A DNA stretch of 64,000 nucleotides, taken from positions 124,001 to 188,000 of the IMG/VR virus record IMGVR_UViG_3300033141_006329; one strand, 5' to 3'. The notes beneath the pieces are model-generated. The model was not told the origin of the DNA and did no database searches. It saw only the letters and a list, made by a program, of their open reading frames with translations. Each line of letters begins with the position of its first letter. Positions within the stretch are counted from its first letter, which is position 1. A program made the position numbers and the translations under genes. Shown one piece after another: positions 14,804 through 54,448 of the stretch.

Positions 14804-14818
14804 AGGACAAACTAAAAA
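14804..14818 (+). promoter_or_regulatory. Putative late promoter motif AGGACAAACTAAAAA
   Basis: Motif copy. Confidence 0.65.
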
Positions 14819-15365: not shown

Positions 15366-15380
15366 AGGACAAACTAAAAA
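15366..15380 (+). promoter_or_regulatory. Putative late promoter motif AGGACAAACTAAAAA (capsid operon)
   Basis: Motif copy followed by AGGAGG RBS. Confidence 0.7.
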
Positions 15381-15821: not shown

Positions 15822-17282
15822 ATGAAACATTTATTGAAAGAAACTTACGACCGAACCAAAAGGATGACTGGTATTGATGTACGGTCTCCACAGGGGTTCA
15901 AACAAACTTTAGCAGATCCTAATGCATTTAAGGTTTATGCAAAATCATTATCCGAAGGTCTTGACAAACAAGATCAAGAGGATTTCATGCTGTTAGCAGA
16001 GTGTACTCGTCAGGCATTGATGGAAAATTCTATGTTCCAACTCAATCCTTATGAGACATTAACTATGCCTGTATTACGTAACTTTTATCCCCGCCTTATA
16101 GCTAGGGAATTAGTAAACGTTATGCCTATTGATAAACCTGATGTAATTAAGGGTTTTATTCATGCGAAATTTAAGAAACATGGCGAATCCGCTTTTGATC
16201 ATAATTTCCCAAGTACAGCTACAGATATTTCTCGTGGTCCTTCTGTTGGTATTAATGTAACTAAGACTGCCAATATTGGTACTACTGATATTCTAGCTGA
16301 AGCTGGACTAAGTTCAAGTCAGAGTCATGTGGAACACGATTTTCATATCACTGGTATTTATGATGCAACATCTGGTAGCCCAGCGGTTGTTGATATTATT
16401 CCTACTGTCGATGGTATGTTTTCAGAGACGGTTACTACAGCAAGTCATGAGACTGATGTAATTTCTGGTCACATCGACTTTTTGAATGGAACAATTACGT
16501 GGTCTTCTGCTAATGGTGCGGTTACAGCTATTCGTTATACTGCTGTATGTTCATTAGAAGAGAATCAAATTAATCCTACTGTGAAATTTGAAGTAGAAAA
16601 AATTAGATTTACGACCGTAGATCGAAGAATATCTGCTGAATGGACAATCAACATGGAGCAGGATGTGAAGGCTCTGTGGGATCTGTCATTACAGGGAGAA
16701 TTCGTTAATATAATTGGTGAGCAGATTGCATTGGATATCGATCGTGAGATCATTAATGCTCTCGTGGCTGCTAATGCTGCTTTAAACCCAGCATCTCATA
16801 CACAAACATTTAACCTTTATCCGCCTACAGCTTTTACGTGGGGAAGGAAAATGTGGTATGAGAATGTTATTCCTACACTCAATAACTTAAGTGCACAAAT
16901 TTATAATAGTACATTAATGGGTCCTGCTAATACTTTAGCATGTAATCCTCTTGATGCTGCTGTATTTGAGTCTTTAAATAGTTTTGAGTATACTGGTAAT
17001 AGTGTTGACGGTGGTGATGTTGGATATAGAAGTGCAACTGTAACTGGTGGAAAATGGAAAATACTGGTAAGCTCTATTGTACCACAAGGTAAAGTAATAG
17101 CTAAATATCGTAGTTCTGATTTATCTCGTGCGGCATACGTGTATGCCCCATACGTGCCAGCCCTACTTTCGCCGTATCCTTTGGGAAATATTCCCTCATT
17201 GACAATTTTAACTCGCTATTCGAGTAAAGTTATTCGTCATAAGGCTCTTGGTGTTCTTAATATTACTGATGTTGCTCCTTAA
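15822..17282 (+). CDS. gp23: Major capsid protein, T4 gp23-like
   Basis: P.LIARELVNV.P, R.ISAEWT...EQD..A, IA..IDREII, YVYAPYVP and LTRY motifs. Confidence 0.93.
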   Translation: MKHLLKETYDRTKRMTGIDVRSPQGFKQTLADPNAFKVYAKSLSEGLDKQDQEDFMLLAECTRQALMENSMFQLNPYETLTMPVLRNFYPRLIARELVNVMPIDKPDVIKGFIHAKFKKHGESAFDHNFPSTATDISRGPSVGINVTKTANIGTTDILAEAGLSSSQSHVEHDFHITGIYDATSGSPAVVDIIPTVDGMFSETVTTASHETDVISGHIDFLNGTITWSSANGAVTAIRYTAVCSLEENQINPTVKFEVEKIRFTTVDRRISAEWTINMEQDVKALWDLSLQGEFVNIIGEQIALDIDREIINALVAANAALNPASHTQTFNLYPPTAFTWGRKMWYENVIPTLNNLSAQIYNSTLMGPANTLACNPLDAAVFESLNSFEYTGNSVDGGDVGYRSATVTGGKWKILVSSIVPQGKVIAKYRSSDLSRAAYVYAPYVPALLSPYPLGNIPSLTILTRYSSKVIRHKALGVLNITDVAP

Positions 17283-38782: not shown

Positions 38783-38870
38783 TATCCTCTCTCCTTTCTT
38801 TAAAAATAAAATTAGCAAACAAGGTTCTTCATTCATAATTTAATATATATAGTTGAACCGCATATTAGGT

Positions 38871-40179: not shown

Positions 40180-40494
40180 ATGCCAGCAAATAGTAGATTG
40201 TTCGATCTATATGCAGGGGTAACACCATTACCTCCCCATCCACCAATCCCGCCTCCACCAATGGTCGGAGCAATAATAGCATTATGTTCAGGCGATCATA
40301 CAGTAGAATCTTTTAGTCAAGCCACTATCGGAAGTATGGGGTTGGACAACTGTATGATTCATGTGACATTCATAGTAGCAGGAAGCGGGACATCTAAAAC
40401 AAACGGGAAAGCAAAAGCTCGTGTTGGAGATCCTGTTGTCGGTGGTACTATAGGGGTAATGGTAACAGGCGCAGGGACAGAACAGACAGGATGA
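40180..40494 (+). CDS. PAAR-like spike tip protein
   Basis: MPANSRLFD...H; GS....NG...ARVGD.V. Confidence 0.7.
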   Translation: MPANSRLFDLYAGVTPLPPHPPIPPPPMVGAIIALCSGDHTVESFSQATIGSMGLDNCMIHVTFIVAGSGTSKTNGKAKARVGDPVVGGTIGVMVTGAGTEQTG

Positions 40495-40531: not shown

Positions 40532-40569
40532 CTATCTTTAAAAATAATAAGCGTTTAGATAGTGCGCTT
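40532..40569. promoter_or_regulatory. Pseudoknot-like element upstream of RBS
   Basis: Interlocked pairings CTATCT/AGATAG and AAGCG(T)/(G)CGCTT. Confidence 0.45.
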
Positions 40570-40582
40570 TGAGAGGAAAGTT

Positions 40583-41383
40583 ATGAACATGTATCAAGAA
40601 AAATTTGTAGCAGTGGTTAAATGTAATGGAAAAATTATGAGAGAAAGGGATGGAGTTATATCCTTACCATTTGGATCAGAATATTCTATATTATTAAAAA
40701 ATCTTAATACAGTAAAAGCATCTGTAGATATATCTGTAGATAGTATGGATGTGGTTGATGGTCATTCTATTTTAATAGAACCTGAAAAATCTGTAGAGTT
40801 AGAAGGATTTATGAGAGGATCTGTTGCGAGGAATAGATTCAAATTTATAAATAAAACTAAGGAAATATCTGAATATAGGGGTGATAGAATAGATGATGGG
40901 TTAATACGAGTAGAGGTTACATTTGAGAAGAAAATAGAAAAAACAATTACAATATCAGATGGTACTTATTATACTTATTATCCTCCAGTTTATAATCATT
41001 TTACATGGACAGATGGTGGAAGTGGCAGTACTGGTGGTTTATTATCAGAAATGGATTTTTCGATCTCTAATACATGTAGTACCAAATTGGGATCAGGTCA
41101 TGTATCATGTAGTGCCGCCCAGAGTGACATGAGCGAGCCATTATCAGATGAGGGTATAACAGTTAAAGGATCTTCTTGTAATCAAGCATTCGCCCCGGCA
41201 TCAATAGGAATGTTGGAAGATAATTCCTCAGTTATAATATTACAGTTGAGTGGTTATAATGCTGAGGGTATTAAAGTAAAAAGTCCTATAACAGTTAACA
41301 CCAAGATAACATGTGAAACCTGCGGTAAGGGTTCCAAATCTAATTTAAAATTTTGTGGGAATTGTGGAACCTCACTAATATAG
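40583..41383 (+). CDS. Hypothetical protein, beta-rich N-domain and C-terminal zinc ribbon
   Basis: LPFGSEYSILLKN...DGLIRVE...EGITVKGS...C.TCG......FC.NCG; start from GAGAGG RBS. Confidence 0.75.
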   Translation: MNMYQEKFVAVVKCNGKIMRERDGVISLPFGSEYSILLKNLNTVKASVDISVDSMDVVDGHSILIEPEKSVELEGFMRGSVARNRFKFINKTKEISEYRGDRIDDGLIRVEVTFEKKIEKTITISDGTYYTYYPPVYNHFTWTDGGSGSTGGLLSEMDFSISNTCSTKLGSGHVSCSAAQSDMSEPLSDEGITVKGSSCNQAFAPASIGMLEDNSSVIILQLSGYNAEGIKVKSPITVNTKITCETCGKGSKSNLKFCGNCGTSLI

Positions 41384-41459: not shown

Positions 41460-41738
41460 ATGAAAGAACAAACCGTTAAACAATCTGAGGAATTAAAACA
41501 AGCAATAGAATCAAGGGATAAATTTTTACAAAGACATCCTAACCTAAAAATATTTCAAATGGAAATCGACAATGCTTTAGATAGGGTAAAGGACCCCTTA
41601 GAGAGATTGAGAATTCTATTCAAGTTAATAACTAAAAGAAATAATGAGCTACAGGAGGCAATAAACGAATACAAAATTGAATATACTTCATTACCTGAGG
41701 ATGTCAAGAAAGAAGTAGAACCTGTAACAATGTTGTGA
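41460..41738 (+). CDS. Hypothetical helical protein; stop codon supplied by IS end
   Basis: GGAGG RBS; TGA lies inside the IS right end. Confidence 0.6.
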   Translation: MKEQTVKQSEELKQAIESRDKFLQRHPNLKIFQMEIDNALDRVKDPLERLRILFKLITKRNNELQEAINEYKIEYTSLPEDVKKEVEPVTML

Positions 41739-41880
41739 ACTACCACAACTTCAAGTTGCAGCTTCCTGCTTCGCTGAAATCCACTTGACAAGGTTCTATA
41801 CAAGCAACCAAGTTAGAGGTTGATCTCTCAGCAGGCGTTGAACTGATGCGTCCCGCACCAGTTTGATTTAACCCTTTATA
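41735..41880 (-). ncRNA. Predicted omegaRNA/reRNA scaffold overlapping tnpB 3' end
   Basis: Position at right end as known for TnpB; 5' boundary approximate; guide would start at 41734 (AACAUUGUUACAGGUUCUAC). Confidence 0.55.
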
Positions 41881-42990
41881 GAGGATGTTCTTTGCAGCAT
41901 GAATGTCACGATCTTTTCTATAACCACAGTCGCAGACGAACATCCTATCTTTTAAGGTTAGTGATTTGTTAATTGCGTTACACGCAGGACATAATTTAGT
42001 GGAGGGATAGTATCTATCTACGAGCCTTAGAGTATGTGACTTTTTCTTTAAGTCACTCATTATTCCTCCAAGGATTGAATGTTGAACTGATTTTCCAAAC
42101 CACTTCTCGCTCCACCCTTTAATATTCTCGTCTTGCACACAGACAATTTTATACTTCTTTGTGATATGCGAAACAATTTTGTTTTTCGCATCTTTCTTCT
42201 GATTAGTTAACTTGTTGTATTTCTTAGCTATCTTCGAATTGAGTTTCCTATTATTCTTAGAGCCTTTCTTCTTGTGTTTCTTCTTTCGTTGAAGACGTTT
42301 TAGACTTTCTGGTATTGGGAATGAGAAGCTATGCTTCTCACCATTATCAAAAGTAAGAGAAGTCTTGATGCCGAAGTCAATGCCTATAGCTTCCTGTTCA
42401 AACACTTTCTCTTCCTTCGGTAAATAGCAAGTGACATGTAAGAAATAATCTTCGCATTTTCGTACGAGGTTCGCTGTTGCAATCTCTGCATTTGAAGGGA
42501 TTTGTTTCAAACCTATCAGTTTGAAACTACCCTTAAATCCTTGCAGCTTGAGATACTTGCCTCGCAGCTTATGCGTACTATTGAATTGCTTCAGATAAAT
42601 GCTATTCGATCTACTCTTGAACTTCAATCTACCTACTTTCTTACCTTTCTTCTTCTTAGCAGATAGTCCACAAATGTTGTGAAACAACCTCTCTCGAACG
42701 CCCTGCTTCATCTGAGAAGAAATCGCTTCAAGCGAACGAGTTTCGGCGATTTTATCTTTTCCGCAAATTGAGATCTCGTTCACTTTAGTATTAAAATTTA
42801 CCGGGTTATCTGTACCTAACATACAATTATACAACCACTTAGCTTCTAAGAATAAACGATCCAGGTACTCTCGTTTTTTCTTGGAGAGATGTGATTTATC
42901 AAACTTCAGCTCGTAAACTTTACAAATCAAAGACTTACGTCTTTCTCTTGTAGCCTTACCAGCCAGTTTGATTCTTTCGTTTTTTGTCAT
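41740..42990 (-). CDS. tnpB: TnpB RNA-guided endonuclease
   Basis: AIGIDFGIK (RuvC-I), YYPSTKLC.AC, C.CG...DRDIHAAKNI (RuvC-III). Confidence 0.93.
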   Translation of the reverse strand: MTKNERIKLAGKATRERRKSLICKVYELKFDKSHLSKKKREYLDRLFLEAKWLYNCMLGTDNPVNFNTKVNEISICGKDKIAETRSLEAISSQMKQGVRERLFHNICGLSAKKKKGKKVGRLKFKSRSNSIYLKQFNSTHKLRGKYLKLQGFKGSFKLIGLKQIPSNAEIATANLVRKCEDYFLHVTCYLPKEEKVFEQEAIGIDFGIKTSLTFDNGEKHSFSFPIPESLKRLQRKKKHKKKGSKNNRKLNSKIAKKYNKLTNQKKDAKNKIVSHITKKYKIVCVQDENIKGWSEKWFGKSVQHSILGGIMSDLKKKSHTLRLVDRYYPSTKLCPACNAINKSLTLKDRMFVCDCGYRKDRDIHAAKNILYKGLNQTGAGRISSTPAERSTSNLVACIEPCQVDFSEAGSCNLKLW

Positions 42991-43008
42991 TTACAGATTT
43001 CCTCTTTA

Positions 43009-43023
43009 TTTGTAGTTTGTCCT
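43009..43023 (-). promoter_or_regulatory. Late promoter motif AGGACAAACTACAAA inside the IS, upstream of tnpB
   Basis: Reverse complement of TTTGTAGTTTGTCCT, followed by GAGG RBS and ATG. Confidence 0.65.
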
Positions 43024-43133
43024 CTGAGAAGGCTGGGAAAAAACAACAGAATTCATCCACAGCTTCAGGTTGTGGTATTCTTCTTGGATGGGAGGAATAA
43101 TATCCTTAGATAAAAATGTGTCTGATTTTATAA

Positions 43134-43148
43134 AGGACAAACTGTAAA
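43134..43148 (+). promoter_or_regulatory. Putative late promoter motif AGGACAAACTGTAAA
   Basis: Motif copy. Confidence 0.65.
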
Positions 43149-43235: not shown

Positions 43236-44273
43236 ATGAGTTTTGAATTATTAGATGATGTTTTGTTAGAGTCTGGGTATAAAACTCCAGATGAAGAGAA
43301 AAAAGAAGAGGAAGTTGTCAATACTGAAGATAATGATATATTCGAGGAATTAGATGGAATGATCGAAGGGGCTATGAGAGAATCCCTGAGAAATACTGTT
43401 TTTTGTAGTGAAAATGATAGTGATGTTAAATTAGAGCATCTCGAAGTAGTTGAGAGTGCTGAATTTACCGAAGAGCAAATGACTAAGTTTATGGATACTA
43501 CGATATATCCTATATTGGAGATGTCTGGTTCATTAGAAGATAATGATAATGAAACTGTATCGTTGCCAATATTTGAAATAGTTGGTCTCTTAGAGGATTT
43601 AGGTTCAGATGAAATAACTGAGGAAAATGCTGATATAGAATTAGAAGCAATATGCGAATTCTATGGTATAAATGATGAAGATAGGGAAACTATCATTGCA
43701 GAGGCTACAGAATTGTTAGAATCACATGGTATAGATAAGCTTGATCCTTCAATGCAGGATGTTAGTCTTTTAGTATGTGAGACTATAGTTATTTTAGGCG
43801 AAGTTGATACGAGTGAAAATTTGGAAGAAGCAAAGAAGAAGGGTGGACGACCTACAAAGAAACAGGTTCAAATGAGAATACTCAGAGGACGCATAAAAGA
43901 TGCACCTGGAAAGGCTTTGGCTTATAGTAAAGAAAAAGGAAAAGAAGTTGGAAGTTGGGTTGCTGCTAAAGGTAAGGCAGGTTTGGCTAAAGGAAAAGAA
44001 GCTTTGGGTACGAAAAAAGGTAAGATTATAGCTGGTGCTATTACAATGGCTGCTGTAGCTGCTGCTGCTGCTCTTGCATATAGACGTAAGGGAGATAAAT
44101 GTAAAGGTCTTGATGGCGATGCGAAATCTAAATGTAAAGCCGCCGCTGTTAATGATGCAATCAAAGCATTGAACCAACAGAAATCACAATGTAAAAAAGC
44201 AAAAAATCCCGCCAAGTGTGCTGCTGGTGTTGATAAACAAATAGCAAAATGGAAAGGCCGCATGGCTGCATAA
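43236..44273 (+). CDS. Putative internal head protein: acidic N-half, basic C-half with hydrophobic helix
   Basis: Charge switch at LEEAKKK; many L-x-E sites; late motif upstream and terminator downstream. Confidence 0.55.
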   Translation: MSFELLDDVLLESGYKTPDEEKKEEEVVNTEDNDIFEELDGMIEGAMRESLRNTVFCSENDSDVKLEHLEVVESAEFTEEQMTKFMDTTIYPILEMSGSLEDNDNETVSLPIFEIVGLLEDLGSDEITEENADIELEAICEFYGINDEDRETIIAEATELLESHGIDKLDPSMQDVSLLVCETIVILGEVDTSENLEEAKKKGGRPTKKQVQMRILRGRIKDAPGKALAYSKEKGKEVGSWVAAKGKAGLAKGKEALGTKKGKIIAGAITMAAVAAAAALAYRRKGDKCKGLDGDAKSKCKAAAVNDAIKALNQQKSQCKKAKNPAKCAAGVDKQIAKWKGRMAA

Positions 44274-49759: not shown

Positions 49760-49804
49760 AGGACAAACTCTAAACTTAAACAATTTAAGAGAGGGGTTTG
49801 TCCT
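49760..49804 (+). promoter_or_regulatory. Late promoter motif forming an RBS-sequestering hairpin
   Basis: AGGACAAACTCT pairs with GGGGTTTGTCCT directly before ATG; inner stem CTTAAA/TTTAAG. Confidence 0.65.
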
Positions 49805-50998
49805 ATGGTTAGTTGTAAATTATGCGGTAAAAAATTTGAAACTTTAAGAGGTGTTGCTACGCATCTAAGATTTTGTAAAAAGAATCTGAATGAAATGAAA
49901 ATTGTAGATTATTATAATCAATTTATAAAACAAGGTATTGAAGGAAAGTGTGTACTGTGTGGAAAATATACTAGATTTAACGGATTAGATATAGGTTTTT
50001 CTACGTATTGTGGGAGTCGATGTGCAGCACTTGGTGTAAATAAAGGATTAAAGGCAAATCCCAGAATAAATGAACCAAAAAAGAAATCGGTTATCTGCAA
50101 AATGTGTAATAAAAAATTAAACAATATAAATAGCTTGGGGAACCATCTTAAATATTGTAAATCTAATATTGATAGATTAAATTCAAACCAATATTATAAT
50201 AAATATATAAAGAAAGATGATGAAGAATTATGTAAAACATGTGGAAATGTTACTAAATTCAAAGGTCTGGAGAAAGGTTATGATGCATATTGTAGTAAGA
50301 TTTGTTCAAACAGAGATAGACCGATTTCAGAAAAATTAAATAATACTATTATGTATACAGATAGATTACAAAAAATTGGACTTGAACCTATATATGAAGG
50401 TGAATATTTTACCGGACGCCAAGAGATAGAATTCAAGTGTTCAAAATGTAGTCGTATATTTAAAAATTATACATTTAATATATTAAAAATTAGAAACAAA
50501 TGTCCATTTTGTACAGATAAAAGTAGATCAATATCTGAAAGATTAATATATTCATATCTAAAACATAAATTTCATAAATATAATGTTTATAACAATTATA
50601 AAAAATTATTATATCCATTTGAAATAGATATAATAATGCCTTCTCTTAATATATCTTTAGAATATAATGGTCTTTATTATCATTCAAGTCAAAATTCTCA
50701 AAATAGAGATTTGTGGAAATCACATGGATGCATCAAAAATAATTTCAAGCATGTGGTTATATGGGAAGACGAGTTTAATATACATAATAAAGATTATAAA
50801 TTTATAGATACCATAATAAAAAATGCTATGGAATGTGATGTTAAAAAATACATGAAAAATACAAAATATTTTACAACATTTCCTATCAGTATAGCCGATA
50901 TAGACAACTTCGATAAAACTAAAAGATTTAAACTTTTACAGTTGAGTGAATGTAATAAAAACTTTAAAAGACCTCCAAGATCATTATTCGTCCCATAA
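49805..50998 (+). CDS. Free-standing homing endonuclease: duplicated zinc-finger module plus Vsr-like nuclease
   Basis: Two C..C...HL..C...C..CG....F.GL..G...YC modules; EIDI......LEYNGLYYH...IWED. Confidence 0.75.
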   Translation: MVSCKLCGKKFETLRGVATHLRFCKKNLNEMKIVDYYNQFIKQGIEGKCVLCGKYTRFNGLDIGFSTYCGSRCAALGVNKGLKANPRINEPKKKSVICKMCNKKLNNINSLGNHLKYCKSNIDRLNSNQYYNKYIKKDDEELCKTCGNVTKFKGLEKGYDAYCSKICSNRDRPISEKLNNTIMYTDRLQKIGLEPIYEGEYFTGRQEIEFKCSKCSRIFKNYTFNILKIRNKCPFCTDKSRSISERLIYSYLKHKFHKYNVYNNYKKLLYPFEIDIIMPSLNISLEYNGLYYHSSQNSQNRDLWKSHGCIKNNFKHVVIWEDEFNIHNKDYKFIDTIIKNAMECDVKKYMKNTKYFTTFPISIADIDNFDKTKRFKLLQLSECNKNFKRPPRSLFVP

Positions 50999-52676: not shown

Positions 52677-52691
52677 AGGACAAATTAAAAA
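52677..52691 (+). promoter_or_regulatory. Putative late promoter motif AGGACAAATTAAAAA
   Basis: Motif copy upstream of sheath gene. Confidence 0.65.
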
Positions 52692-52753
52692 GACTAGGAT
52701 AAACGTTTAGGATGATAATCCTATTTAAAACACTCATAAAAAAGGAGATTATA

Positions 52754-54448
52754 ATGGCTCATGTAGCACCCGGTGTATACACCAAGATAATTGACCTTTC
52801 CGAATATGTTGCAGGAATTCCCTCTACTATAGGGTTCCTACCAATCATATGCGAACAAGGTCCAGACAATCAGTTAATTCAAACTAATGCTAAGGATTTC
52901 TATGTTGATTTTGGCGAACCTAACATTAGTTATGCAGGAAAAGCAGCAGGACAAGGTCCTTATATTGCAGGATCTTATCTAAGAGAAAGTGATTCTCTTT
53001 ATGTAATCAGGTGTTTACCTGAAGATGCTAATTTTTCGAACTTAAGTATTTTAGCGGAAGCAGAAGGCGGCTATGGGGCGGATTCCACATCAGATGTAAC
53101 CATTGATAGTGATACTGGTATTAACACAACTGGTGAGCTAGAAACATTACTAACGAGCGGTGACGCATGTATAGTTTTTTACGGAGTAGGAAGAGGAGAT
53201 TTTTATAATAATTTCCAAGTTAGTATAAGCAAACATTCTAATCCACAACTATCTGATCCTGCAATTATGGGTCATTATGATATGGTTTATGTGCTGGATT
53301 TATATAAGAGACAATCTGAGGATGATGAGGATGGTTTACCACAGTATGAAATCATATCTTCCTTTGAGGTATCATTTAATCCTGTCCGGCTAGATGCGAG
53401 TGGAGAAAGTATGTTCATCGGGGATATCATAGATAGATATAGTCGATATGTAAAATGCGTTGTTGATAGAGATAAATGTGGCGTAGCCGTTAATGCTGGA
53501 CATGCCGATTTTTCTCAACCATTTGTATCAGGTGCTATTAATCTGGACAATGGCGATGTGGGTAGCCTTTTTACTGCGACTGGTATTGACCTTGATGTTG
53601 CGAAGCAAATATTAGGTAAGGCTTATACAGGTACTTTACCTAAGACTCAGACAGGACTTTACGTTGACGAAGTTTTGGATACAGAAGATGTCTATTTTAC
53701 TATCGTTTTGGATGGTGGATATGCAACGGATGTAAAGAGTCAGATATATACGCTAGTCCAAACTAGGAAGGATTGTGTTGCCCTGATTGATAACGGCGAC
53801 AATACAACTCCTGCTAATGCTATAGTAGCTCGTGATGATAACCATACTTATAATACTAAGTATATGGCATTATATGAGAGCTACAGTAAAATATACGATA
53901 CTTATACCGGACGTGATATATGGGTCAGCCCAATATATCATATGGCTAATATCGTTCCTTATACTGATAATGTAGCTGAGGTTTGGTGGGCACCTGCAGG
54001 ATTTAATAGAGCCACTATCGGAACTATTAAGGAACTGCGTTATAGCCCCCGTCTAGGAGAGAGAGATAATTTTTACTTAAAACAAATAAATCCAATCGTG
54101 AAATTTAATGTTGGGTATACAGTGTTTTCACAATTAACCACACAGAAGAGACCAAGTGCATTACAAGATTTAAATATCATACGTTTAGTGCTATATTGCA
54201 AAAGGGCCATAGAACAATTTGCCAAATTTTTTATTTTTGAGCAAAATGATGCCCTCACATGGTCATCAATTTCTATACAAGTAAATAAATTCTTAAAAGT
54301 TATACAAGATAAGAGAGGTTTGTATAGTTACAGTGTTGATGTTGGGGCCTCAGAATATGAGTTAAAAAGCAAGCAAATACATCTGAACGTTACCCTTGAA
54401 CCTACCCGCGTGGTGGAACAAATTTATCTAAATTTCTTCATTAAGTAA
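52754..54448 (+). CDS. gp18: Tail sheath protein, T4 gp18-like
   Basis: APGVYTKIIDLS, FGEP, RKDCVALID, WWAPAGFNR, INPI, FEQND..T motifs. Confidence 0.93.
   Translation: MAHVAPGVYTKIIDLSEYVAGIPSTIGFLPIICEQGPDNQLIQTNAKDFYVDFGEPNISYAGKAAGQGPYIAGSYLRESDSLYVIRCLPEDANFSNLSILAEAEGGYGADSTSDVTIDSDTGINTTGELETLLTSGDACIVFYGVGRGDFYNNFQVSISKHSNPQLSDPAIMGHYDMVYVLDLYKRQSEDDEDGLPQYEIISSFEVSFNPVRLDASGESMFIGDIIDRYSRYVKCVVDRDKCGVAVNAGHADFSQPFVSGAINLDNGDVGSLFTATGIDLDVAKQILGKAYTGTLPKTQTGLYVDEVLDTEDVYFTIVLDGGYATDVKSQIYTLVQTRKDCVALIDNGDNTTPANAIVARDDNHTYNTKYMALYESYSKIYDTYTGRDIWVSPIYHMANIVPYTDNVAEVWWAPAGFNRATIGTIKELRYSPRLGERDNFYLKQINPIVKFNVGYTVFSQLTTQKRPSALQDLNIIRLVLYCKRAIEQFAKFFIFEQNDALTWSSISIQVNKFLKVIQDKRGLYSYSVDVGASEYELKSKQIHLNVTLEPTRVVEQIYLNFFIK

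Follow-up and report, generated by a model that had tools for sequence, protein, structure and literature searches.

The 64-kb window, meaning the whole stretch of 64,000 nucleotides analyzed, is part of a 223-kb IMG/VR phage record (33% GC, ~71% complete) and harbors a tnpB gene that lies antisense to the flanking phage operons. The gene belongs to a complete insertion sequence with a GC content of 38%. The parts of this element and its immediate surroundings are listed here; coordinates are those of the window unless the genome record is named.

41735..43096, minus strand: whole IS200/IS605-family tnpB-only insertion sequence, 1362 bp, delimited by empty-site comparison
43097..43101, minus strand: TAM ATTAT, core TTAT, flanking the left end (TTAT in four of four copies)
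43076..43096, minus strand: left-end terminal segment, 21 nt (TCCTCCCATCCAAGAAGAATA), where homology with the relatives L006 and L007 begins
43057..43075, minus strand: left-end subterminal hairpin CCACAACCTGAAGCTGTGG, near-identical to the right-end hairpin
43058-43049, minus strand: box GGATGAATTC after the left-end hairpin, also present in the left ends of relatives
43009..43023, minus strand: promoter-type motif AGGACAAACTACAAA, class 1, from sequence and conservation in four left ends
43001..43006, minus strand: ribosome-binding site AAGAGG, 10 nt before the ATG, read from the sequence
41740..42990, minus strand: tnpB, 416 aa, ATG at 42990..42988, from Pfam and structure matches
41735..41865, minus strand: putative RNA scaffold (omega/right-end RNA) that overlaps with the 3' end of tnpB, from RNAalifold
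41761-41743, minus strand: right-end hairpin
41739-41735, minus strand: terminal TTCAC
41715..41734, minus strand: 20-nt flank AACATTGTTACAGGTTCTAC, the predicted guide, on the strand opposite the final codons of the 92-aa gene
41460..41738, plus strand: neighboring phage gene, 92 aa, whose last codon and stop (TTG TGA) are finished by the element
43134..43148, plus strand: resident phage motif AGGACAAACTGTAAA for the gene at 43236-44273, unchanged at the empty site of L101

The ends of the element were set by an empty site in the sister contig L101, a 9.3-kb contig of a marine-sediment run found through a protein database and contig look-up. L101 encodes a homolog, 91% identical, of the 345-aa neighbor protein of the window, and there the 92-aa gene is followed directly by this homolog with no element between. 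The contig reads ...ACAATGTT/ATAATACCC... (the slash marks the joint), and in the window positions 41735...43096 stand between ACAATGTT and ATAATATCC. In an alignment of metagenome contigs to the locus, the L101 joint was reproduced in run X1 and a second vacant allele appeared on a contig of the cold-seep run X3, which belongs to a separate study. The vacant alleles of L101 and run X3 join 41734 straight to 43097 (ATAATA...), and skip-joints from 41734 to 43114/43119 occur in two metagenome runs of different studies (X1 and X3). The same locus is therefore filled in the window and empty in L101 and the X3 contig, a presence/absence polymorphism. In run X1, the interior of the element reaches 3-10x the depth of its flanks and comes in several sequence variants.

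On the strand of the element, the junctions read TATTAT/TCCTCCC... and ...GTAGTTCAC/AACATTG..., so that the insertion lies 3' of TTAT, with no target duplication and with TTCAC as end motif. Hairpins with near-identical stems stand at both ends (43075-43057 and 41761-41743), and terminal inverted repeats are absent. The lack of inverted repeats and of target duplication, the T-rich TAM, and an end motif unlike the TAM are shared with IS200/IS605 elements. The arrangement follows a logic like that of ISGst2, in which the TAM is TTTAT and differs from the end motif at positions 3 and 5 (Meers 2023, PMC10055086); here the TAM is TTAT and the right end TTCAC. The right end of the element supplies G+TGA to the 92-aa gene, whose product ends ...TML* and has equal length in filled and empty alleles.

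TnpB matches the Pfam families OrfB_IS605 (PF01385, 4e-13) and Cas12f1-like_TNB (PF07282, 4e-12), both above curated cut-offs, and aligns with solved TnpB structures, including 8H1J and 8EXA of ISDra2 (1e-14). The RuvC D/E/D blocks (GIDFG, QDEN, DRDIHAA) are intact in a block-wise alignment with the solved TnpB chains, as is the zinc finger CxxC...CxC; the catalytic triad of ISDra2 TnpB is D191/E278/D361. With its RuvC-fold TnpB, zinc finger, and similar subterminal hairpins at both ends, the element resembles IS1341-type, tnpB-only members of IS200/IS605, for which the lack of tnpA is normal. No match to tnpA (PF01797) was found in the element or in the 223-kb record, which spans 223 kb of a 306-kb parent contig, and no second tnpB was found in the record.

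Several minor features surround the insertion. On the plus strand, the left-end hairpin followed by TATTCTTCTT (43057-43085) scores as an intrinsic-terminator-like site, which could stop antisense read-through from the upstream plus-strand operon before the next promoter. Genes for a PAAR-motif protein (40180-40494, plus strand) and for a 273-aa protein with a C-terminal zinc ribbon (40562-41383, plus strand) are located a short way upstream of the insertion site. The latter has homologs at 15 IMG/VR loci (36-48% identity) that are non-syntenic and without the promoter motif, and for the protein at 43236-44273 no relatives were found in IMG/VR. Positions 1-64 of L101 hold the right end of another tnpB copy at another location, immediately preceding the C-terminal part of the 273-aa gene homolog; the terminal hairpin sequence differs, and upstream of this right end the homolog is unalignable with the window.

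Promoter-type motifs in the element and in the phage

The motif AGGACAAACTACAAA is located 74-88 nt inside the left end of the element and 18 nt upstream of the tnpB ATG, and is followed by a GAGG ribosome-binding site. A preliminary description of this DNA had placed such a motif, with its GAGG, between the left-end hairpin and the tnpB start of an insertion sequence without tnpA, and had matched it to the motif before the capsid and sheath genes. All of this holds: AAGAGG occupies 43006-43001, the tnpA search was negative, the motif falls within the empty-site boundaries, and the same motif occurs at 15367 before the head operon and at 52678 before the sheath gene. The resident phage motif AGGACAAACTGTAAA is external to the element, separated from its left end by 38 nt, and is directed away from it. 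Donation of the tnpB motif by the phage intergenic region was considered and rejected, as the empty site has only the plus-strand motif at 43134. The empty-site boundaries thus place the tnpB motif inside the mobile unit.

The motif is a recurrent element of the phage genome. The 15-mer (<=3 mismatches) is present in 18 copies in the window, compared to 3.1 +/- 1.6 in shuffles, and none of 100 shuffles reached 18. The core GGACAAAYT has 50 copies in the 223-kb record, and 40 of these are intergenic and co-oriented with a gene, the intergenic share of the record being 6.3% by the ORF map. Thirty-six of the intergenic core sites sit 25-107 nt upstream of a co-oriented start codon. Back-to-back divergent pairs, 36-44 nt apart, occur at 87276/87312 and at -16778/-16734 (relative to the window), a spacing that leaves no room for other promoters.

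Three classes of motif can be told apart. Class 1 has the consensus a.A GGACAAACT AtAAA, with A at -1 and C at core position 8, and is without an upstream A-tract or CCACAC box. It stands upstream of virion genes, namely the major-head operon, the sheath, the baseplate hub and wedge, a 1914-aa tape measure, and a virion protein, co-oriented with them, as expected of a phage late promoter. Class 2 consists of an A-tract, a CCACAC box, and then ACT GGACAAATT AAAAAC, and is found upstream of the clamp loader, a purD-type GAR synthetase, a glycosyltransferase, and other non-structural genes, which suggests a middle class whose core is common to the late class. The third motif, ACTATATATATTAAATTATGAA, is AT-rich, has 5-6 genome copies, and heads long blocks of small ORFs, such as a block of ~50 ORFs running from 38836 to 18957; by analogy with other RNAP-encoding jumbo phages, it is likely an early-promoter class. 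The sites and genes in question are the following.

15822-17282: major head protein (PHROG major head protein, 5e-41), class 1 motif at 15367
52712-54448: tail sheath (PHROG, 1e-57), class 1 motif at 52678
12418 (plus strand) and 18908 (minus strand), and 58-118 kb of the genome record: class 2 sites
38832-38849, and 27014, 44164, 195892, and 219714 of the genome record, minus strand: third motif ACTATATATATTAAATTATGAA
27565-37867 of the genome record, outside the window, minus strand: operon of RNAP beta and split beta'

The phage encodes RNA polymerase (RNAP) genes of its own, a divergent beta subunit (1350 aa) and a beta' subunit split into pieces of 269 aa and 1544 aa, the larger of which contains LAGLIDADG and intein-splicing domains. 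A class 1 motif lies upstream of this operon (genome 38411). The head protein shows a distant likeness (21% identity) to those of AR9/PBS1-type jumbo phages, and the motifs may, by analogy with that group, be read by phage polymerases (PMC7598289). The two systems have in common a short motif near the presumed start and phage-borne beta/beta' genes. The consensus here, GGACAAAYT A[T/A]AAA, differs from that of the AR9/PBS1-type motifs, shows much stronger conservation, and occurs before two gene classes. A match to the AR9 late consensus was tried and set aside, the fit (GACA...TA) being unconvincing. A search of the phage for other polymerase candidates found no sigma70 region 2 (PF04542) and no T7-like RNAP (PF00940), the latter search being uninformative since the control genomes gave no match either. 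Cultured relatives of the locus were not found by megablast against 50,697 GenBank phages, and the jumbo phages of the clade in which the element resides are uncultured and come from marine sediment. IMG/VR labels the 223-kb record a 'provirus'; GC is uniform across it (31-36%), its content is typical of jumbo phages (own RNAP, sheath, tape measure), and a metagenome contig of 306 kb has the identical tnpB as well. Trimming may have produced the label as an artefact.

The antisense position of the element means that read-through from the flanking operons cannot express tnpB. A search for a sigma70-type promoter inside the element upstream of the gene yielded no candidate, the scan being no better than in shuffles. 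Together with the retention of the motif in a drifting spacer (described below), these observations make an internal start recognized by the phage the economical explanation. The phage transcription machinery would then start at or just downstream of AGGACAAACTACAAA, the polymerase probably being the phage-encoded multisubunit RNAP or else a host polymerase with a phage factor. Promoter function and a start at this position are suggested by the association of the motif with gene functions.

The motif might instead be a real cis-element of the phage that is not a promoter, that is, a signal in the 5'-UTR for RNA processing, stability, or translation, or the site of a regulator, with tnpB transcription starting elsewhere. 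The distance of only 15-20 nt between the motif and several Shine-Dalgarno sequences (for example at 14805 and 86002) is in keeping with this idea, since a start downstream of the motif gives very short leaders. However, the closely spaced divergent pairs provide no space for separate upstream promoters, and an element that lies antisense to its neighbors and has no sigma70-like site needs some internal start. The variable distance between motif and ATG also fits a start signal at the DNA level better than a fixed RNA operator. A non-promoter role is accordingly considered unlikely, if still worth weighing.

The timing of expression is a separate matter. The tnpB motif carries the discriminators of class 1 (A at -1 and C at core position 8; no A-tract, CCACAC, or ACT). 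It departs from the ATAAA of most class 1 sites in having ACAAA, a variant seen at one other intergenic site. It also has CCAG at -14, like some class 2 sites, so that its assignment to class 1, as read from the sequence, is not airtight. If the motif were a general or middle promoter, tnpB would be expressed through much of the infection and the argument of the preliminary description from abundant genome copies would fall. The core GGACAAAYT common to all classes, the ACAAA and CCAG of the tnpB copy, and the existence of continuously expressed genes in AR9 (PMC7598289) speak for such a broader promoter. Against it, all four motif-bearing copies (window, L006, L007, L110) show the class 1 state at the discriminating positions, and the head, sheath, baseplate, and tape-measure genes are preceded by class 1 sites. 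General or middle expression thus seems distinctly unlikely, and late expression from a class 1 promoter, as suggested by the functions of the genes behind such sites, is the preferred reading.

Relatives of the element and retention of the motif

A protein search returned four close TnpB relatives (79, 77, 74, and 72% identity), the next being at <=56%. In a maximum-likelihood tree, P0001-P0005 form one clade with support of 100/100 and a long stem. The preliminary description proposed that close tnpB homologs be checked for restriction to phages and for retention of the motif, and cellular copies for its absence. Both turn out as predicted: clade members with readable context reside in sister phages and every intact left end in the clade keeps the motif, and it is found in none of 53 homologs at 28-53% identity, searched within 350 nt upstream. 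These distant copies come from other viral contigs, metagenomes, and GTDB genomes (bacterial and archaeal, including Spirochaetes, Synergistota, Desulfobacterales, archaea, and others). Several of them retain the hairpin and a GGATGAATT box, and the GGATGAATTC box is also present in the left ends of the distant relatives L010, L011, L013, and L105. The motif is likewise missing from L103-L105 (53-56% identity). In L103, and with the nearest outgroup TnpB (P0006), tnpA lies directly upstream of tnpB.

Four left ends carry the motif: those of the window, L006, L007, and L110. L006 (P0002) and L007 (P0003) have complete left ends (TTAT/TCC..., hairpin, GGATGAATTC), with GGACAAACT before tnpB followed by CTAAA and TTAAA, respectively. 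Their contigs are shorter than 2 kb, too short to prove a phage context, and their flanks gave no PHROG match and no tblastx match to the phage. The L110 left end lies at the end of a 31.9-kb IMG/VR contig, which cuts off tnpB; this contig shares sequence with L002 and uses the motif elsewhere. It was the only real case among 21 matches of an IMG/VR pattern scan for the left-end box plus motif, the other 20 being chance matches in unrelated coding sequences. The left-flank TAMs are ATTAT in the window, GTTAT in L006, and TTTAT in both L007 and L110. Between the GGATGAATTC box and the motif, the spacer measures 26 nt in the window and up to ~92 nt across the left ends; it has diverged or expanded and the motif has been retained. 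The ~92-nt spacer of L007 is unalignable, as is that of L110. The TTAAA variant of L007 and L110 is a common variant in the sister phages L002, L005, and L110.

The pattern in these spacers bears on whether the motif is a chance resemblance, or phage sequence that hitch-hiked passively and has no function. Such an origin could draw on the AT-richness of the spacer and on the relatedness of the clade copies by descent. The 9-mer core, however, is expected only ~3e-4 times per 100-nt spacer (estimated from base composition), four copies have kept it although the spacer is otherwise unalignable in L007 and L110, and its enrichment across the genome is extreme. Chance or hitch-hiking is therefore extremely improbable.

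Other clade members are found in sister phages of the window, at L002/L003/L004 (P0004) and L005 (P0005). These phages have a sheath 83% identical to that of the window and other genes at 60-77%, and the same motif before the sheath and other genes; their tnpB is inserted at different positions. In P0004 (L002), the left end and the motif have been lost, and tnpB lies 16 nt behind a phage ORF. P0004 is nested in the tree within motif-bearing copies, which are paraphyletic to it, indicating that the motif is ancestral to the clade. The position of P0004 directly behind phage ORFs without a left end also indicates that an own promoter is not indispensable. A short remnant occurs at L002:2760-2810 (minus strand) and L129:1520-1570 (plus strand), where a solo sequence of ~45 bp has a left-end-like start, the hairpin, and TAGTTCAC, and no tnpB. 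Judged from its sequence, the remnant seems to have been left when recombination between the left- and right-end hairpins, which are near-identical, deleted what lay between.

A copy such as P0004 raises the question of domestication, in which an immobile TnpB would serve the phage in guide-directed repression or in defense against competitors and the motif would be ordinary phage gene regulation. The embedding of the L002/P0004 copy in a phage operon without its left end, the failure to find tnpA in the record, and the recruitment of phage TnpB-like proteins as Cas12r (10.64898/2026.04.20.719267) are in line with this. The element in the window nevertheless has both ends intact, with TAM and end motifs, is precisely inserted opposite a matching empty site, and keeps its catalytic residues. 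The right flanks differ in all close copies (at least six different flanks), which means that the copies are independent insertions and their guides differ. The guide is the flank itself, with no CRISPR-like array, and the excess depth of the element interior in run X1 also speaks for mobility. Domestication is for these reasons held to be very unlikely, and a mobile element remains the favored interpretation.

Predicted guide, vacant alleles and homing

The last ~130 nt of the element form a putative RNA scaffold that ends in the right-end hairpin and TAGTTCAC. RNAalifold on seven homologs predicted 53 pairs, 17 of them with compensatory changes, and the homology shared among copies stops exactly after GTAGTTCAC. 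A search of Rfam with the element found no family, with one chance match at E = 0.92. Past this point lies the flank AACATTGTTACAGGTTCTAC, the predicted guide. It agrees in 18 of 20 positions with the vacant allele of L101, where the matching stretch follows TATTAT directly. The mismatches fall at positions 11 and 12 and may reduce cleavage of this sequenced allele. At the sequence level, a guide match at a vacant site is the signature that would be expected of TnpB homing into, or cutting of, unoccupied sites (PMC10055086; PMC13565253), and the role of an RNA-guided homing endonuclease envisaged in the preliminary description is consistent with this fit of flank guide and TTAT to a sister phage.

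The locus is thus probably best explained as a complete, tnpA-less IS605-family element with an internal phage promoter-type motif, for which RNA-guided homing is proposed. The transcript would run from tnpB through the structured 3' scaffold into the flank, of which ~20 nt would serve as guide. A complex of TnpB with this RNA would cut vacant insertion sites flanked by TTAT, whether these belong to sister phages infecting the same cell or to sister copies of the genome from which the element has been excised. Repair of the cut by recombination with an occupied copy would restore the element or spread it, which amounts to transposon homing. Against this reading, no tnpA that would take the element to new sites was found in the record.

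Homing of this kind is reportedly a property of the TnpB/omega-RNA transposons ISDra2 and ISGst2 (Karvelis 2021; Altae-Tran 2021; Meers 2023). Like such TnpB/omega-RNA elements, the present one has a putative scaffold that overlaps the tnpB 3' end and would run into the flank, and a guide predicted to fit the vacant donor joint. Unlike these, it resides in a jumbo-phage replicon, and neither the element nor the record yielded a tnpA; unlike distant members of the family, its left-end spacer contains a clade-specific, non-sigma70 motif of phage promoter type.

A second precedent is provided by phage T4. The preliminary description invoked T4 homing endonucleases with late promoters, and the literature agrees, as genes such as I-TevI, I-TevII, and SegB are equipped with middle or late promoters of their own (Edgell et al. 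2010, PMC2988022). Some T4 homing endonuclease cassettes are promoter-less (PMC2988022), and the P0004 copy resembles these. In both systems, a selfish nuclease gene sits among phage genes with a promoter, or promoter-type motif, of the resident phage immediately upstream, and related phages are polymorphic for its presence, the vacant allele being the target (here a predicted one). Insertion spares the neighbors in both, here by rebuilding the stop codon of the adjoining gene. Unlike the T4 enzymes, the element is predicted to recognize its target through a guide RNA rather than a protein, and it is a transposon with defined ends of the single-strand type rather than an intron or free-standing ORF.

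A third comparison is with Cas12r of the Thermus Lalka phages, a phage-encoded nuclease derived from TnpB (10.64898/2026.04.20.719267). The element likewise combines a TnpB-like nuclease with a promoter predicted to follow the phage program. Cas12r has a CRISPR array, is a middle gene, and is used against other mobile elements, whereas the present element has no array and has kept its transposon ends.

TnpB genes are common in phage genomes. TnpB in phages, TnpB homing, and homing endonucleases driven by late promoters are each already known separately. The literature search found no report of an IS200/IS605 element with a clade-specific phage promoter in its left end, none of filled and vacant TnpB sites among sister phages, and no description of the expression of a TnpB element in a virus that possibly does not use host sigma70 promoters. 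Homing from one co-infecting phage to another is a purely theoretical proposal (PMC13565253). The locus offers a natural case, with exact ends, a vacant allele in a sister phage, a matching guide, and a clade-specific promoter-type motif conserved within the element. It makes two questions testable: whether IS605/TnpB elements act as RNA-guided homing endonucleases in phage populations, and whether transposon ends evolve host-specific promoters. It also supplies a compact TnpB whose TAM, TTAT, is simple, and a well-defined set of putative promoters, in three motif classes, from a jumbo phage that is uncultured and encodes RNAP.

A more general idea is conceivable, though rather doubtful at present. 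TnpB insertion sequences of jumbo phages might be phage-specialized, TnpA-independent, RNA-guided homing elements, in which the left-end spacer serves as an exchangeable promoter slot that tracks the non-sigma70 machinery of the resident virus. The nuclease would then be made only late in infected cells, where it would convert or destroy co-infecting sister genomes. If so, these elements would be an RNA-guided equivalent, found in nature, of marker exclusion in T4, and type V CRISPR effectors carried by phages would likely have evolved by way of them.

The window contains another nuclease gene, encoding an HNH/homing-endonuclease-like protein of 397 aa (49760-50998, plus strand; PHROG, 4e-18). 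The gene has a class 1 motif to itself (GGACAAACTCTAAA, at 49761). The sister contig L101 contains it (96% aa identity) with the same motif, and it is missing from the homologous interval of the sister phages L002/L003. This is a second selfish nuclease gene with the same promoter type as tnpB.
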